DNA of 9,306 nt from Selaginella moellendorffii (lineage: Eukaryota > Plantae > Lycopodiophyta), in contig NW_003314623.1 of NCBI RefSeq assembly GCF_000143415.4, positions 1-9,306 of the forward strand, in the 5' to 3' direction. This document shows, one piece after another, positions 251 through 9,306 of the stretch (its first letter is position 1; each line of letters begins with the position of its first letter). The notes beneath the pieces were generated by a model. The model was not told the DNA's origin. It did not search any database and saw only the letters and a program-made list of their open reading frames with translations. The position numbers were made by a program, and so were the translations under genes.

Positions 251-448
251 CCGTAGAATACGTCTACGGATTCGACATCCCCGCAGGGAGTCGGGTGTAG
301 CTCCCTATGCCTGGTCGACCTAGTTAACCCATGCTAATTAGCTTACCTTCGGCGCGCCTTCGGGTCCCAACATATGCCACTTGCTCAACTTTGCAAATTG
401 GTATTTTTAATTGAACTTTGCATAAGTACATAGAGTTCTGCCTTGCAG

Positions 449-604
449 AAATTCCTCCACTAGATCTTGCGCGTTCGCTATGTTCTCCTCCGGTTCCCAT
501 GTTGCTTCGCAGTGTGGAAATCCTTTCCACTTCACATGGAACTCTCTCACCTCGCGTCCTTGTCGCTTGCTCTTGTGCGCATTGAGGATGGCCTCGACTT
601 CGTA
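449..604 (-). other. Chromodomain at the integrase C-terminus (group I-like, aromatic residues Y/W/F retained)
   Basis: EYEVEAIL...FHVKWKGFPHCEATWEPEENI..AQDLVEEF in ORF 407-811. Confidence 0.93.
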
Positions 605-788
605 TTCTTCTTCCCCTTGGATAACCTTAGGTAAAGGTCTTACTTGGTCCTTGCGAAGCGGATCCTCAAAGTACGGCTTGAGTAAGTTCACGTGGAACAC
701 TAGGTGCATCTTCCCCATCTCTCGAGGAAGTCGGAGTCGGTAAGCCACTTTACCGATTCGTGCCTCAATCTCATAAGGCCCTGCGAAC

Positions 789-840
789 CTGCTTAAGGAA
801 CTCAAGATCAATTCATTTACAGGAATACATGCATTTTTAC
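789..840 (-). other. Predicted 52-nt spliceosomal intron just before the integrase GPY motif
   Basis: CAAAG|GTAAAAATGCATGTATTCCTGTAAATGAATTGATCTTGAGTTCCTTAAGCAG|GTTC. GT-AG ends, 33% GC; removal joins ORF 837-1301 to ORF 407-811 in frame, giving SRKLTQRFAGPY. Confidence 0.87.
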
Positions 841-1257
841 CTTTGGGTCAACTTTCGGCTGATCCCACTTGGTAGCCTGAGGTTCTTGGTGTTCAGCCAC
901 ACCTTCTCCCCAGCTTGGAACTCCACATCCCAATGCTTTTGGTTCGCGTACTTAGTTTGTCTTTGTTGAGCCCGTTCAAAGGAATCCCTCACTAGATTCC
1001 AAATGTTGAGTCTTTCCGCCGTGAATGCCTTAACTGCGGGTAACTCTCCATGATACTCGGCCATGCTGAGTTCCACAGGACCTTCAATAGCTCGCCCATT
1101 GATGACTTCCCATGGACTCACCCCAATGCTCGAATGTGGTGAGTTGTTATAACACATTTCCGCAAGTCCCAAATGACTTACCCAGTCGGTCTGGTCTCCC
1201 GAGACATAGCATCGCAAATAATCCTCCAGCTGCCTATTCACCTTTCCGTTTGTCCGT

Positions 1258-1304
1258 CTGTCAAGAAGTGTTAGTGCCATCAATCTTGACTTAATACCCA
1301 TTAC
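1258..1304 (-). other. Predicted 47-nt spliceosomal intron in the integrase core
   Basis: ACAG|GTAATGGGTATTAAGTCAAGATTGATGGCACTAACACTTCTTGACAG|AC. GT-AG ends, CACTAAC branch motif (1270-1276), 38% GC, in-frame TAA; removal rebuilds HPQT-D-GQTER. Confidence 0.82.
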
Positions 1305-2046
1305 CTGTTTGTGGGTGATAGGCTGTGCTGAATTTCAACTTGGTGCGATACTGTTTTAGGAGTGTCCTCCAGAACCTACTGGTGAAGATCTTATCTCGAT
1401 CTGAGATAATCTCTTCCGGCCTTCCCCGCACTCAAACCACTTGTTCGAAGAACAGCTTCGTCACACCTTCCGCATCCACTTCCGTTGTGGTGGGTATGAA
1501 ATGTGCCATCTTTGAAAATCGGTCCACCACCATGAATATCGCATCGAACCCCTCACTTGGGGGTAGTCCCATGATGAAGTCTATCGTGAGACATTTCCAT
1601 GGACGATCTGGAATGGGGATGCTTTGCAACAAGCCCCCACTAGCCTTCGTCACGGCTTTGACCTGCTGACATGTTGGATATGTCTTTACATAGTCTTGGA
1701 CGTCCTTAGCCATATCTGGCCAGTGATACTTCCTTTTGAGTAAGCCCATCGTCTTGGGCACTCCGCCGTGTCCCGCGAGAGGTCCGTCATGACACTCTTC
1801 CAAGGCTACCTTCCTTAGTTCCCCTTCTGGAACATACACCCTCGTTTGCTTGTAATATATGAGTCCGTTGCGTTCCGCATAGCCCGTTTTCTCTTCCGTT
1901 GGCAGCTCACCTCTCTGGTGAGCTTCCCGCGCCTCTAGATTCCTCAGCAACACTTCTTGTGCTACACCATCGTTCTCATATGCTATCCGCACATCGTCCC
2001 AGAAGGTTGTTGTTGCGCTGGATATCGCCAACCTCAAGCTCGCTTT

Positions 2047-2390
2047 TCAACTTAGCGCATCTGCCATGATGTTGCTCTTCCCAGGCTTATACAAAATCTC
2101 ACAATCAAACTCGGCCAAGGCATTGGCCCACCGACCTTGTTTCCCTCTTAGGTCAGGCTGTGACAAGAAGTGTTTCGTTGCCACATTGTCCGTGTAAACC
2201 TTGAAGTGTCTCCCAAGGTAGTGTCGCCACTCCTTGAGCGCCTTGACCACCGCAAACAATTCCTTCTCGTGGGCAGGCCACTTCCGTTGAGCCTTGTCCA
2301 ACTTCTTCGAGAAGAACGCTACTGGATGGTTGTCTTGCTTCAAAACTGCGCCCAACGCAAAGTCCAAAGCATCCGTGTCTACCTCAAAGT
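2047..2390 (-). pseudogene. RNase H domain (Ty3/Gypsy type)
   Basis: [53 protein letters not shown]. Confidence 0.95.
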
Positions 2391-2659
2391 CCTTACCAAA
2401 ATCTGGTAATGCCAACACCGGAGCCTTCCTCAACTTCCCTTTGAGGTGGACGAATGCCGCCTCGCATTCTGCTGTCCATACCATCTTCCCTTTTCCTGTT
2501 TGGTCCGTTAAGGGTAGGGCTACTCTCGAATAGTGTCTGATAAACTTTTGATAGTAGTTGCATAGCCCCAAGAACGCCCTCAACTCATGTACATTTGAAG
2601 GTCGCTCCCATTCCTGGATCGCTTGGACCTTCTCCGGGTCCACCTTGAGCCCGTCCTGG

Positions 2660-3200
2660 CCCACCACATGCCCGAGAAACTTTACCTCTTGTTGAGCAAA
2701 GTCACATTTGCTCTCTTTAGCATATAGTTTGTGTTCCCTTAGTTTCTCAAACACCTTCACCAAGTGTTCGGCATGCTCCTCTAGCGTCTCACTATAGATC
2801 AGGATGTTGTCGATATAGACGACCACGAAGTGATCCAGATAGGGTACAAAGATGTGGTTCATTAGCACTGAAAACGTGGCCGGCGCATTGCATAGCCCAA
2901 AGGGCATCACCAAAAACTCAAAGCTCCCATACCTCGTTCGACAAGTTGTCTTCTCGACATCTTCCTCGGCTACCCTGATCTGGTAGTATTCTGACCTTAG
3001 GTCAATCCTCGAGAAGTATTTTGCCTTTCCCAACCTATCGAACAAGTCCTCAATCCTTGGCAAAGGGTACTTGTTCTTCTTTGTATACTTGTTGAGCAAC
3101 CGGTAGTCTATGCACATGCGCATAGAACCATCTTTCTTTTTCACAAATAACACCGGCGCCCCATACGGCGACTTGCTCAACCTAACATACCCTTTGTCCA
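2660..3200 (-). pseudogene. Gypsy reverse transcriptase domain (approximate bounds; catalytic YIDD altered to YIDN)
   Basis: [59 protein letters not shown] (YIDN at 2806-2817), FLGHVV. Confidence 0.97.
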
Positions 3201-3583
3201 CCAACTCCTCTAGTTGGCTCTTGAGCTCCTTGAGTTCTTTTTCGTTCAAACGATAGGTGGGACAAACTACTGCCTCAGCACCCTTGACCAGCTCAATCTT
3301 ATGTTCTATCGATCGTGCGGGGGGCAACCCCGCCAGTAGCTCCTCCAGCATGGTATCCTGGAATTGGTCCAACACCCGCTGGATCACCAAAGGTACTTCT
3401 TCCTTTCCTGTCTTTTTGTCACTCTTCACCGAGAGTAAGCACAAAAAGGCTGCCTTAGTTCCTTTGGTGAGTTGTCCTCTTGTAGACATCAGATTTAAGC
3501 AGGAATCTTTGGCCTTACTTTGCCCTACCTTTAGATCCTGGGCCTCCACCCTAGATCTTCTTCCTTGGGCATTTGCCAGTACC

Positions 3584-3683
3584 NNNNNNNNNNNNNNNNN
3601 NNNNNNNNNNNNNNNNNNNNNNNNNNNNNNNNNNNNNNNNNNNNNNNNNNNNNNNNNNNNNNNNNNNNNNNNNNNNNNNNNNN
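3584..3683. other. Assembly gap (100 N, probably a placeholder size)
   Basis: Run of N. Confidence 0.99.
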
Positions 3684-3960
3684 TTCCGAAGATCACGTCA
3701 AATCCCGCCATGTCCAACACGGTGAAATCCATGTCTACTTTCCATGTCCCTACTTCGACTCTCGCTTGTCAAAGTACCTCATCGGTGCTTTGGCTACCTT
3801 GAACAAACTCTGTAGTCCTTGGTTCGCCTAGCCGCTGCACCGTTAGTCCGGCTTGCCGGACTATGTTTGCAGCCACAAAATTATCCGAAGCACCCGTGTC
3901 AATAAGGATCTTAACAAAGCTGCCTCTGAGCTTCCCTCGGAGGGCTAGTAGATGTCGCGA
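3684..3960 (-). pseudogene. Aspartic protease domain (approximate bounds)
   Basis: ILIDTGASDNFV active site (DTGA at 3889-3900) and C-terminal FDVIFG motif; in-frame TGA at 3769-3771. Confidence 0.9.
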
Positions 3961-4083
3961 ACGACTCTTTACCAAAGTTGCTCGTGTAATGAGTAACTTT
4001 GAGTTAGGGACTAGATCACATACCTCAGTTTGGACTTCACCCGACTTGATGGCCATATTGGCTCTGGCCTTCTTCGGGTAGGG

Positions 4084-5223
4084 ACATTCCCTCGAAAAGT
4101 GTCCCGCTTCACCGCAGTTGTAGCATACGTTGTTTCCCACGCTGCTAAACGACTTGACCTTTTTATCTGTGGGTTTGTCTCTTTTCGCTTGACTTCCCCA
4201 CGTACTCGCTCGCTGGTCACCGGATTTGCCTTTCCGGAACCCCGAGGACTCATTCTTAGAGAAACTCTTCTTGAATTTCCCCTTGCTATATGTTCCCCTC
4301 GGTTTGGCCCCTTTGTGAAACGTGGATCCCGACCCTGTCGTGTTCCCCTTTCGCAGGTTATCGTTGAAATGCACCTTGATGGCCGCATCTAACGCTTCCT
4401 TGTAGTTGGTCGGGTTTCAGCGCATCACCTCACCGCGAGCCCAGGTTTGCAAACCTGATATAAAGGCATGGAACGCATCCATATCCCCCATGTCCGTGAC
4501 AAGTATCCTCTTTGCCATGAACCCATTCACATATTCTTGGATGGTTCCAATCTGCTTCAGCCTACTCAGCTCATCTCTCAGATGCAGAGTGGCATTCGGA
4601 GGAACGTATGTTGCGCGGATCCTCGCCTTCATCATGTCCCAAGTGGCCACCGGTCCTTCGTTGGCTTCTGTTGTTCTCCACCAAGACTTGGCATTATCTG
4701 CCAAGTATGGTTTCGCACATGGGACCTTCTCCGAGCTCGGTAACCGCAACGCTCGGAAGTAGTCCTCCATATCGTAAAACCAATCCTCCACAACCTTATA
4801 GTCGTTCACTCCCTTGAACACCGGTGGGGGCTTTGGTTTGTACTTGGGAACTGCCTGAGGGACTGATTCCACTTCGGTCTGTTCGACCTTGTCTGGTTTT
4901 GCCTCAGTCCCTGCCGAAGGGTCCACACCTTCTGCGCTGCCAGCATCCGCAGTCTTTCGCTTTTTCTTCCGCTTCTCGTCACGCTTTAACTTGCATACGA
5001 GAGTCTCTAGCAGGGCATTGGTCTGTGCCAACTGTCCTTCTAGCACGTCCAATCGAGCCTTGGACGACAGAACCTCGCCACCGGACTCCTGTTTGGAAGT
5101 TTCCTCACTGGAGTCCTCCTCATGCAAGGATTCCTCATCCATAGCCTCTTGTTCAACCGGAGGCTCCAGCTCTGGCGGAGGTTCCGTCTCCGCCTAGGTT
5201 CGCTTACACCCTGCCCTTGCCAT
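4084..5223 (-). pseudogene. gag: Gag (retrotransposon gag/capsid domain plus CCHC nucleocapsid knuckle)
   Basis: KPPPVFKG..VEDWFYDMEDYF..YLADNAKSWW..TWD..LRDELSRLKQIGTIQEYVNGF..FISGL is typical retrotrans_gag. CYNCGEAGHFSREC (CX2CX4HX4C) lies at 4084-4125. Confidence 0.9.
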
Positions 5224-5256: not shown

Positions 5257-5322
5257 CTGAGGAAAAGGCTCCGATACCAAATTGTAAGCCACAAATTTTT
5301 CCTTTCCAATTTGCTAACTTAC
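5257..5322 (-). other. Candidate 66-nt 5' leader intron spanning the LTR terminus and PBS
   Basis: GAG|GTAAGT consensus donor (5317-5322), CTTAC branch-like motif at the LTR end, CCTTTTCCTCAG acceptor ending 5257, 38% GC. Non-coding, so no reading-frame test is possible. Confidence 0.6.
5267..5279 (-). promoter_or_regulatory. Primer binding site for tRNA-iMet
   Basis: TGGTATCGGAGCC versus canonical TGGTATCAGAGCC (one A>G, allowing G:U pairing), separated by ATT from the LTR end ...GGCTTACA. Confidence 0.9.
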
Positions 5323-5860
5323 CTCGTCTATCCGTCCGACACTGCCTTGGCTTTTGCTAAGTTCCCTCGCCAAGGTTCTCGCCTATGGTACTAACTCCTT
5401 ACTTGGTCCTACTTGCTTTCAGCTACTCACTACACGAGCAACGGAGCATTAGCCATCCATCCTCGGATTCCCAATTCTCTCCCAATCCCCCTCCCCGGGT
5501 TAGACTAGACTTAAGGTTCGGCTACACTCCCTGCAGGCACAAGCAGTCAAACACATCAAGCCTCCAGGTTCCTAACACCCCTTGGTACAACAAGACTTGA
5601 TCATGGGACCCTCTAAATCCCAAGCCTTGGGTGCAGCACTTGCTTCGGGACGTCAGGGCGAAACACCGTGGCCTAACGGCCCGGTATGGGTACCTCTAGC
5701 CTGCCATTTCCATCCTGAAGGAAGGCCCATGCCCCTAGGCAGGGCGAGGACCAATGAGCCGCATGGTACTCAAGTGAGGCACCACTCCACATGAGCCGGG
5801 AGCACCGCAATCGGTTTCCCTTTCGGGAGTGGGAGCTGCTCTTGAGCACTTCCTTGGATG
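5283..5860 (-). repeat. 5' LTR of the Gypsy element (partial; upstream part lost in the N gap)
   Basis: Non-coding segment ending in ...TTACA directly before the PBS. No second copy is in the window to confirm its extent. Confidence 0.75.
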
Positions 5861-6387
5861 NNNNNNNNNNNNNNNNNNNNNNNNNNNNNNNNNNNNNNNN
5901 NNNNNNNNNNNNNNNNNNNNNNNNNNNNNNNNNNNNNNNNNNNNNNNNNNNNNNNNNNNNNNNNNNNNNNNNNNNNNNNNNNNNNNNNNNNNNNNNNNNN
6001 NNNNNNNNNNNNNNNNNNNNNNNNNNNNNNNNNNNNNNNNNNNNNNNNNNNNNNNNNNNNNNNNNNNNNNNNNNNNNNNNNNNNNNNNNNNNNNNNNNNN
6101 NNNNNNNNNNNNNNNNNNNNNNNNNNNNNNNNNNNNNNNNNNNNNNNNNNNNNNNNNNNNNNNNNNNNNNNNNNNNNNNNNNNNNNNNNNNNNNNNNNNN
6201 NNNNNNNNNNNNNNNNNNNNNNNNNNNNNNNNNNNNNNNNNNNNNNNNNNNNNNNNNNNNNNNNNNNNNNNNNNNNNNNNNNNNNNNNNNNNNNNNNNNN
6301 NNNNNNNNNNNNNNNNNNNNNNNNNNNNNNNNNNNNNNNNNNNNNNNNNNNNNNNNNNNNNNNNNNNNNNNNNNNNNNNNNNNNNNN
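5861..6387. other. Assembly gap (527 N) hiding the Gypsy/Copia junction
   Basis: Run of N. Confidence 0.99.
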
Positions 6388-7330
6388 GTTGGTGATGTGT
6401 TGTATTGACTCAAGGCAATAGTAGCATATGTGGGGCGAGTCATCAATGCCAAATATGTGAGGCAACCAATGAGATGCCGATAGGGAGTCCCAGTGGGTAG
6501 AGGCTCACCAGACTGCTCAACTGTGAGGTCGATAGCACCAACGACCATCGGGGTCTTGACGGGGTGGCAATCACGCATACCAAACCGATCCAGCAAGACT
6601 TCGACTTTACATCGTTGGCTGCATGTAGCCACCAGACTCAACGTGTGACTTCAAAGCCAAGAAAGTAGGAGACTTGGCCAAGGTCCTTCATCTGGAATTG
6701 CTGGCTGAGAGCAGCTTTCAGAGCAGCAATGGCATCGGTGTCATCACCCATGATGAGCAAATCATCAACATAGAGGGCCACAATAAGCATGTGCTCAGCA
6801 TGACCATTCACATACACATTGTGATCAGCATGACAGTGACGAAAGCCTTGAGCGCGTAGGGTGGCATCAAATTTTTGATACCAAATACAGGAGCTCTGTT
6901 TTAGGCCATACAAAGCTTTCCGCAATTGCCATATAGGGCCACCAAGGGCAACATCGTCCTCAAAACCAGGAGGTATATGCATATAGATGTCCTCTTGCAA
7001 ATCCCCATTCAAAAATGCAGTTTTGACGTCCATATGGTGGACTTGCCATTTGTGAGCAGCTGCAAGTGCAAAAAGAGTACGGAGGTTGGCCATTTTTACA
7101 ACTGGTGAGAATGTTTCATTGTAGTCAAGGCCATGGACTTGGCGAAAACCATGAACAACCAACCGTGCCTTATAACATACAACCTGACCATCTTTCCCAT
7201 ACTTTTTGGAAAAAATCCATTTTGGATCCAAAACACGTCATCCCAATGGCGCTGAATCAATTGGAACATAAGTTCCGTTAACCTGAATGGAAGAAACTTC
7301 TTCCGCAATAGCTTCCATCCAAGATGAAGC
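6388..7330 (-). pseudogene. Copia reverse transcriptase (RVT_2-type), cut by the gap before RNase H
   Basis: WMEAIAEE, YKARLV, DYNETFSPV, MDVKTAFLNG, LYGLKQ, LYVDDLLI, MKDLG..FLG, YRHLIGCLTYL..TRP. Confidence 0.96.
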
Positions 7331-7618
7331 CTCAGGTCCTGAGACGGCCTCATCATAGGTCATGGAGATGCTGACGTCAACAAGGACACAAAAGTCATCA
7401 AGCTTTGCAGCATCTGCTTCAGCATTTTCCCAGACTTTCAACGAGGGCCGACGTTCCCGGGGGTGATCAAGAACTGGCATCGGATCAGGCATGCCATGAC
7501 GTCGACAAGGTGGTGGAGGTGTTGGAGGCCTGTCCTCGACTGGAGGAGCATCAGCTGGTTCAAGCATGTCTAGAAGTGGAGGATTCCCTAGTGGAATCTC
7601 TGGTGGCAACTCATGAAT

Positions 7619-7788
7619 AGGATCTTGAGGTGGAGGCAAGAGTGGACCATCTCCCATAAGTGGATCAAAGGAACAAGTCAAGTCTCAGCAATGAAAGAAG
7701 GATCTTGAGGCAGAGGCAAGAGTGGACCATTTCCCATAAGTGGATCAAAGGAACAAGTCGAGTCTCAGCAATGAAAGAAGGATCTTGA
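7619..7788. repeat. 80-bp tandem duplication in the Copia IN-RT spacer
   Basis: Units start at 7621 and 7701 (gatcttgagg...atgaaagaag) with a partial third at 7781; 4 mismatches in 80. Confidence 0.95.
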
Positions 7789-7829
7789 AGAGCCTTTGTA
7801 CGCATGGGAAAGTCGTCTTCATTGAACAT

Positions 7830-8720
7830 GACATCTGTGCTTACAAGAGCCTTGTGAGATGCAAGATCCCATAATTTGTAAGTTTTTCTCCCGATGGTGT
7901 CGTCCTGTGCATATCCAGATGAATTTTTTACTTTTGGGATTTAGCTTTTTCCGAAGTTGATCAGGGGTATGTGAATATGCTGCACAACTGAAGACTTGAA
8001 AGTGGGACACATTAGGAGTAGAACCTGTCCAAAATGCCTCAAGGGTTTTTCCATCCAAAGCAGCCGTGGCAAGGCAATTTTGTACATGCATTGCTGTGGC
8101 TATAGCCTCTTGCCAAAACATCTTGTCAAGATGTGCATCAGCTAACAAAGTGTGAGCATCAGCTAACAAAATGTGAGCAGCATTAACAAGAGTGCGATTC
8201 TTCCTTTCTACAACACCATTTTGCTGGGGGGTGTAGCGGGCTGTGGCTTGCAGTTGTATGCTTACATCATGACAGATGCCCCGAAGATCATTGTTGAGGT
8301 ATTCACCACCACCATCAACTTGAAGAGATTTTATCTTTCGACCAAGGAGGTTTTCAACATAGGCCTTGTACGTTTGAAAGGCAACAACTGCATCACTTTT
8401 ACGCATCAAGAAGTGGATGCATGTTCGACGGCTATAGTCATCAATAAATGTGATGAAATATCTTGCCCCATTGTGACTTGGCACGTCCATGGGGCCGCAA
8501 AGATCAGAATGGACCAATTCCAGAAGTTAAGTGCTCGATGCTTACTCGGCGAGAAATTCTGACGGTGATGCTTGCCTAAAATGCAAGCTTCACAAAATGT
8601 AGATGGGATACGTCGGAAATCCAATCCAGTAACAATATCTTGGGATTTCATCCGTTGAAGAGATTGGTAATGAACATGACCAAGTCTTTTATGCCAAAGC
8701 TCCGCACAAGAATCTGCCTC
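7830..8720 (-). pseudogene. Copia GAG-pre-integrase plus integrase core (approximate bounds)
   Basis: AELWHKRLGH, FCEACILGKHHR, VHSDLCGP, FIDDYSR, VDGGGEY, TPQQNGVVERKNRTL, FWQEA, RKKLNPKS. Confidence 0.94.
8135..8179. repeat. 21-bp in-frame tandem duplication in the Copia integrase
   Basis: gcatcagctaacaaagtgtga / gcatcagctaacaaaatgtga; translates as AHILLAD-AHTLLAD. Confidence 0.92.
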
Positions 8721-9306
8721 CACAGTCTGAAAGGCTTGAACCGGGTCAGCAGCAATAATCTCATACAAGTCCCCAATGCATGACCCACGAAGCAATTGTG
8801 TCCCAAGCATATAAAAGTTGCTAGAGTCAACCAAAGAGACTCCCTTTGCATCAAAGATTACCACTACATTTTGATCATATATCTTGGCGACAGACATTAA
8901 GTTTCGTCGCAAAGTGGAAACGCGCATGGCACCATCAAAGGCTATGGTCCTCCCATGATCAAGTGAGAGCCAAAATTGCCCAATGCCTTCTACGGGATAA
9001 TGGTATTGTCACCTAAATGAACACCATGTTTTCCAATACTTGGCTGATAACACTCAAAAAGACTCTTCTTATTGCTCATAAGATTAATACAACCAAAGTC
9101 TAAGAGCCACCGGCTTGGTGCTGCAATTGCCTCTGCGTTGTAGAGCTCCTCAGCAGCCTCATTTGCTGTAGCAATTCCATCATGCTCGAGTAGATTGGCT
9201 TTTGCCGGCGTAGCTAGTCGCTTGACAGGCTTGGGAGCAAGGCAATCTCGAGCCCAGTGGCCCATCTCCAAGCAGCGAGCACACTGATTCTTAGCAAGTC
9301 TGGGCT

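Follow-up and report, generated by a model that had tools for sequence, protein, structure and literature searches.

How does a stretch of DNA with the ends of a spliceosomal intron come to lie in the integrase gene of a retrotransposon? Gains of introns are considered very rare in land plants, and, since retroelements copy themselves by way of RNA, one would expect any intron that is spliced efficiently to be lost from the next generation of copies. As a rule, the LTR retrotransposons of plants have no introns, Ogre and EVADE being noted exceptions (PMC12786077). The question is posed here by a 9,306-nt stretch of Selaginella moellendorffii DNA, all of which was analysed and which is called the window below. 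In it, the initial annotation had placed a 47-nt intron at 1258-1304, splitting an integrase motif just before the catalytic Glu; both the coordinates and the sequence proved correct, and on the minus strand the stretch starts with GT and ends with AG.

The integrase gene is part of a gag-pol copy in which the Pfam domains follow one another as gag, zf-CCHC, aspartic protease, RVT_1, RNase H, Integrase_H2C2, rve, SH3_Tf2-1 and Chromo. In other words, the order is gag-PR-RT-RNase H-IN with a chromodomain at the integrase C-terminus, as in Ty3/Gypsy chromoviruses, and the closest solved structure to a relative of the element is that of yeast Ty3 Gag-Pol (7q5b). The window is laid out as follows.

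407..5142, minus strand: coding region for gag-pol in a single Ty3/Gypsy chromovirus copy (Pfam), handled as one broken gene
4447..4707, minus strand: Retrotrans_gag domain (PF03732, E = 2.2e-12)
4081..4131, minus strand: CCHC zinc knuckle (PF00098, E = 2.2e-08)
3778..3936, minus strand: aspartic protease, partial, running into the 100-N gap (PF13650 and PF13975, both below cut-off)
2665..3144, minus strand: reverse transcriptase domain (PF00078, E = 2.6e-37)
2107..2478, minus strand: RNase H domain (PF17919 and PF17917, E about 1e-30)
407..2037, minus strand: integrase gene with C-terminal chromodomain, containing both the 47-nt stretch and a second one of 52 nt
1654-1821, minus strand: H2C2 zinc domain of the integrase gene
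1312-1425, minus strand: end of the rve core of the integrase gene
1258..1304, minus strand: candidate intron 1, 47 nt, GT...AG, phase 1, separating ...AYHPQT from GQTER
671-790, minus strand: SH3-like domain of the integrase gene
446-604, minus strand: chromodomain of the integrase gene
5268..5279, minus strand: primer-binding-site-like word just upstream of gag, read from the sequence, which we take to be a tRNA-iMet-type site
5281..5860, minus strand: non-coding sequence farther upstream, probably the last part of the 5' LTR, truncated by the 527-N gap
6388..9306, minus strand: Ty1/copia neighbour with CCHC knuckle, integrase and RT (open reading frames)
3584..3683, unstranded: assembly gap of 100 N
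5861..6387, unstranded: assembly gap of 527 N

The 3' end of the chromovirus copy is cut by the window edge and its 5' side by the 527-N gap, and there is no LTR repeat pair within the window; the region at 5281..5860 does not match the copia sister copy. The Gypsy copy adjoins the copia element or is nested in it, the junction being concealed by the 527-N gap. The copia element itself is 87-92% identical at the nucleotide level to S. moellendorffii scaffold GL377565.1 (GCA_000143415.2), and its integrase shares 77% of its amino acids with one S. moellendorffii protein, every other match being at 50% or below; the host is accordingly S. moellendorffii or a close relative, a lycophyte. Between its integrase and RT regions, at 7619-7778, it contains an 80-nt tandem duplication of 95% identity. 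At the other end of the window, 178-247 holds two tandem 35-nt units that are 80% alike and whose minus strand has tRNA T-arm-like words (GGTTCGAGTCCC-like), while Rfam and tRNA scans of the window returned no RNA gene, there or elsewhere. S. moellendorffii is the sole plant reported with a Helenus TRIM bearing tRNA-like LTRs (PMC10886601), and these units could represent a Helenus-type TRIM insertion or a portion of the 3' region of the Gypsy element.

In what state is the copy? The gag-pol frame contains four in-frame stops, one each in gag, in the CCHC/PR part, in RT-RNase H and in the integrase gene, of which the first sits at the end of gag and is possibly a natural terminator. The integrase gene has, in addition to the two extra stretches, one single-base frame change, as had been claimed from the reading frames. 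Part of PR/RT is masked by the 100-N gap, and the RT active-site box has a form found in 3 of 120 relatives, the usual form being present in 77 of them. The copy is dead, and it is unable to make its proteins whichever way the 47-nt and 52-nt stretches are processed.

Let us now consider the 47-nt stretch itself. The piece directly 5' of it ends in ...AYHPQT and matches positions 63-102 of the 102 positions of Pfam rve, while the first five codons 3' of it read GQTER. Its length is 2 modulo 3, and read-through gives HPQTGNGY and then a stop, just as the initial annotation had stated for the unspliced frame. The donor is AG/GTAATG and the acceptor ACAG/. The branch motif that had been reported near the acceptor is there too, a CTAAC with its predicted branch A at a distance of 13 nt from the 3' end; TTGAT occurs 22 nt from that end. 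What is more, the composition changes at the boundaries, with 38% GC and 30% U in the stretch as compared with 47% GC and 18% U in the flanks. How often would such a combination turn up by chance? GT..AG ends are found in 0.31% of the window's 17,080 47-mers, and GT..AG together with CTAAC placed 8-25 nt from the 3' end in two of them, 1258-1304 being one; the chance of this combination in a 47-mer is about 1e-4. On both strands of the window, 1258-1304 is also the only GTAA...CTAAC...AG segment of 40-70 nt. Note that the repeat at the junctions allows the bounds to slide by up to four bases; even so, we estimate that a random 47-nt insertion would look like this with a probability of the order of 1e-3 or less. 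The same repeat, ACAG at both junctions, had been offered as a possible target-site duplication. The repeat is present, but at 4 nt it is largely splice-site consensus, and we do not retain that interpretation of it. An ATG within the stretch starts a 154-aa open reading frame (840-1301, minus strand) that continues into the integrase C-terminal region; most matches to it in an exhaustive search begin near residue 19-20, its initial residues having no homologues.

About 0.4 kb downstream, in the same integrase gene, there is a second extra stretch, of 52 nt, with the integrase C-terminal region on one side of it and the SH3-like domain on the other. Its donor is AG/GTAAAA, its acceptor GCAG/, and TTGAT lies 19 nt from its 3' end. 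Its GC content is 33% and its U content 35%, as against 52% and 18% in the flanks, and read-through into it halts translation at once. AG/GTAA...CAG/ segments of 40-70 nt number only four in the entire window, both strands included. The two stretches are both sense-oriented and less than 0.5 kb apart, and short direct repeats occur at the junction pairs of both. Read exon by exon, frames and flanking conserved residues fit at both stretches, in a copy that has other breaks. Compared with one another, the two are similar at chance level only; they are unrelated sequences.

Are these stretches extra relative to other elements? To define surplus DNA, 387 related proteins were compared with the element piece by piece. 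At the 47-nt site the median surplus across 73 relatives is 46 nt, which equals 47 minus the single-base change, and at the 52-nt site it is 52 nt across 62 relatives. In the whole element these are exactly the two sites with a consistent surplus; none comparable was found in gag, PR or RT-RNase H of the chromovirus copy, nor is there one in the neighbouring copia integrase. Other insertions within the alignments were considered as further stretches of this kind and set aside, as they have coding-like GC or correspond to the N gap. Four related elements were compared as DNA, of which two are metagenome contigs, the third is a Haematococcus locus and the fourth a Logan contig. In every one of them the three integrase pieces share a single frame, the first site has six codons exactly, and the second has no additional sequence. 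Among 390 related proteins, the motif is contiguous across the first junction in 115 and across the second in 57. With relatives contiguous at both junctions, the stretches are not ancestral to chromoviruses.

These relatives are rather distant ones. The exact open reading frames of the element are absent from the protein collection, and word searches gave best identities of 61% for RT and 58% for the N-terminal part of integrase. An exhaustive search of cluster representatives with the 154-aa frame gave at most 44% identity, where the representatives stand for 50% clusters and the result is accordingly not proof of absence; among these 50%-identity representatives, the closest named clusters are Haematococcus and metagenome proteins, none of them from Selaginella. 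For the integrase C-terminal region, the nearest relatives with a name come from the green alga Haematococcus lacustris (41-42% identity). They are multi-copy chromovirus polyproteins (JASKMD010000017.1), not elements of land plants, and are encoded by contiguous frames. A metagenome locus search with the element returned no loci, and the 23-nt core of the 47-mer had zero matches in metagenome, prokaryote-genome or viral contigs.

Would stretches of this size be processed as introns in this host? Introns of S. moellendorffii average 110 nt, with a median of 59 nt (PMC3729371, Table 3), and the intron-length distribution of Selaginella clusters with those of fungi (PMC6157073). In a 22-kb host locus (L003), one of our own gene models requires a single AT-rich intron of 53 nt (L003:4-629), in which TTGAT lies 21 nt from the end. 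The ferrochelatase gene of the same locus requires, in our modelling, 627 nt of introns in 7-11 pieces, a solution that is not unique, and the best candidates among these, likewise from models that are not unique, are 43-63 nt long, of the form CAG/GT...CAG/ and 29-34% GC. A precise exon-intron model of this gene was given up since the solution is not unique, and it is kept solely as a rough guide to size. Although 47 nt is 12 nt under the host median, both 47 and 52 nt are ordinary lengths for Selaginella when set against that median and the range of about 43-63 nt in our L003 models. The comparison with host intron lengths that the initial annotation had proposed thus comes out in its favour, and the objection that the host might not process introns of about 47 nt falls away.

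Two further features are in line with plant introns. Each stretch contains a predicted branch-site-like word at a distance of 10-30 nt from its 3' end, and both are U-rich and GC-poor relative to their flanks, a property of plant introns quoted in PMC3735527. TTGAT recurs in both stretches and in the 53-nt candidate intron of L003, each time at 19-23 nt from the 3' end, and, in what is a tiny sample, may be a host branch-site word. The 47-mer and that candidate intron also have the 10-nt word AGATTGATGG in common.

The initial annotation had also seen in the 47-nt stretch a 7-bp inverted repeat reminiscent of introner-like elements. Such a repeat exists, but the significance given to it does not hold up, the repeat being internal and not terminal. 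As a hairpin, or as terminal inverted repeats, it was rejected: with z = -1.26, 22 of 200 shuffled sequences fold at least as well. Local duplication was likewise discarded as a source of the 47-mer, there being no second match longer than 11 nt in the window. A second copy of the 47-mer was found neither in the window nor in 22 kb of host DNA, loci L001-L002 or three public collections. Neither stretch has terminal inverted repeats, and the 4-nt repeats at the junctions are largely splice consensus. A survey has reported introners from 175 genomes but from no land plant (PMC9860276). With two stretches that are unrelated, a repeat that is internal and at chance level and a 47-mer that was found once in the sequences searched, we do not follow the introner-like interpretation.

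Judged by the DNA alone, then, both stretches are intervening sequences relative to their homologues, with full splice signals, intron-like composition and a size that fits the host. Namely, we are dealing with two independent sense-strand stretches of host size and composition, with full signals, which are the sole surpluses of the element, and for this reason the most economical reading, and a well-supported one, is that both are real introns of the spliceosomal kind. That the 47-nt stretch would be of spliceosomal type had been the core of the initial annotation, and its signals beyond chance, its Selaginella-like size and the second, 52-nt stretch all speak for it.

How would a retrotransposon come to possess them? 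The explanation we favour, with a probability of roughly 0.55, is that the 47-nt and 52-nt stretches would be host-type U2 (GT-AG) mini-introns borne by a Selaginella chromovirus lineage, of which the copy studied here would be a decayed member. Both stretches would already have been present in the RNA that templated this copy, and would in this sense be borne by the lineage. Unspliced RNA would serve as the template for new copies and would encode Gag, PR, RT-RNase H and an integrase truncated by an early stop, within five codons for the first stretch and immediately for the second. Removal of both stretches by the host spliceosome would give an RNA encoding an integrase with the catalytic Glu, the SH3-like domain and the chromodomain, so that integrase synthesis would be gated on splicing, like RT-IN synthesis in Ogre. 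The shared orientation of the stretches and their proximity are what one would expect if a replicating lineage tolerates only spliceable insertions. That said, this explanation is drawn from one copy, and a dead one, and retroelements are expected to lose spliced introns (PMC12786077). What is more, a copy whose own integrase is defective can still propagate with the proteins that other copies supply, and splicing therefore need not be under selection.

Could the stretches instead have been gained by this copy only, after its integration and at the level of DNA, as filler at a repaired break or as small introner-like insertions that were never usefully spliced? We regard this as unlikely, yet deserving of serious attention. 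The copy is otherwise decayed, there are short direct repeats at both junction pairs, and the protein and metagenome searches brought up no family copy with the stretches, all of which would agree with a private gain. Such a neutral process, however, must yield two full sets of sense-strand signals within 0.5 kb while leaving nothing of the kind in the remaining ~7 kb of transposon sequence in the window, and the junction repeats are mostly splice consensus. Insertions of the introner kind are difficult to reconcile with two stretches that are unrelated in sequence and without terminal inverted repeats, the internal hairpin being at chance level, in a land plant, a group where introners were not found (PMC9860276). 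A different route to the same end would be the entry of host introns, by reverse splicing, into the genomic RNA of the element and their fixation by the element's own reverse transcription, in which case the copy, or a small sub-lineage, would have been integrase-defective from the start. The sense orientation of both stretches, their exact GT...AG bounds and their host-like size and composition are what this route would produce, the 10-nt word that recurs in the L003 intron model hints weakly at it, and the reverse-transcription step would presumably come free in a retroelement; but two rare events are needed in one RNA lineage and the donor intron was not identified, which makes it, in our view, quite improbable.

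The confinement of both stretches to the integrase gene raises yet another possibility, that the integrase-chromodomain part came from, or was exchanged with, a domesticated integrase-derived host gene that had gained ordinary introns. This we hold to be very improbable, given that gag, PR and RT-RNase H lie upstream equally preserved, collinear and in one frame, that the integrase part has a stop and a frame change of its own, and that our searches returned no such host protein. Finally, one may ask whether the stretches are simply chance insertions or an assembly artefact with fortuitous GT/AG ends; the assembly is, after all, a draft with N gaps, and introns were sought at breaks of the reading frame. 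Such an outcome is scarcely credible when the odds of GT..AG ends and a placed CTAAC in the 47-mer are those given above, when a second stretch with AG/GTAA and CAG/ compounds the improbability, and when both surpluses were objectively defined against 60-70 relatives.

If the two stretches are indeed mini-introns borne by a chromovirus lineage, as we favour, the element would keep separate pools of RNA for translation and for copying, with integrase gated on splicing. Somewhat short of an even chance, in our estimation, is the stronger proposal that a lineage stably carries two integrase mini-introns and would make integrase solely from spliced RNA, which would be the second independent case of splicing-gated pol after Ogre. 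On stable carriage, the 47-nt stretch may be the first such intron inside the catalytic core of an integrase, possibly a mimicry of host genes toward silencing systems, a suggestion we put forward just as tentatively. Were the stretches private to this copy, they would document a recent gain of introns in a land plant, naturally recorded and open to dating. Either way, the gains and retentions of introns can be tallied, one copy after another, among the transposons of short-intron genomes like that of Selaginella.

It is instructive to set these stretches beside known systems. They resemble ordinary Selaginella introns in their size, in their AG/GT...CAG/ bounds, in being GC-poor and U-rich and in having a YTNAY word some 20 nt from the 3' end, but differ from them in lying in a retrotransposon gene whose homologues in other hosts are intron-less at these places. 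With introners, of which some families have flanking repeats of 3-9 bp and whose median length varies among families from 30 to 654 nt (PMC9860276), they share being short and GC-poor, being inserted in coding sequence and providing or recruiting GT...AG sites; introners, however, are defined by many near-identical copies, whereas the Selaginella stretches are mutually unrelated and lack terminal inverted repeats. Among retrotransposons, BARE1 has a 104-nt intron that is U-rich compared with its flanks and whose splicing abolishes pol expression (PMC3735527). As in BARE1, copia and EVADE, host splicing would set which proteins an RNA can encode, but those elements make a Gag-only RNA by splicing and their genomic frame is continuous, while in the Selaginella copy the frame is broken as long as the RNA is unspliced, and integrase would depend on splicing.

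The nearest analogue, on our best reading, would be Ogre, a Ty3/Gypsy element of the Tat lineage in legumes, whose intron separates gag-PR from pol and whose splicing can give Gag-Pol (PMC4408406). Both are LTR retrotransposons with a spliceosomal intron on the sense strand, those of Selaginella being candidates; in both, removal of the intron joins, or would join, frames and lead to downstream pol products; and in both the unspliced form must persist if the intron is to be inherited (PMC4408406, PMC12786077). The difference is that the single intron of Ogre, placed between gag-PR and pol, has been shown experimentally to be spliced, whereas the Selaginella copy would have two mini-introns, of 47 and 52 nt, within the integrase gene of a lycophyte chromovirus, as known from the DNA of one decayed copy.
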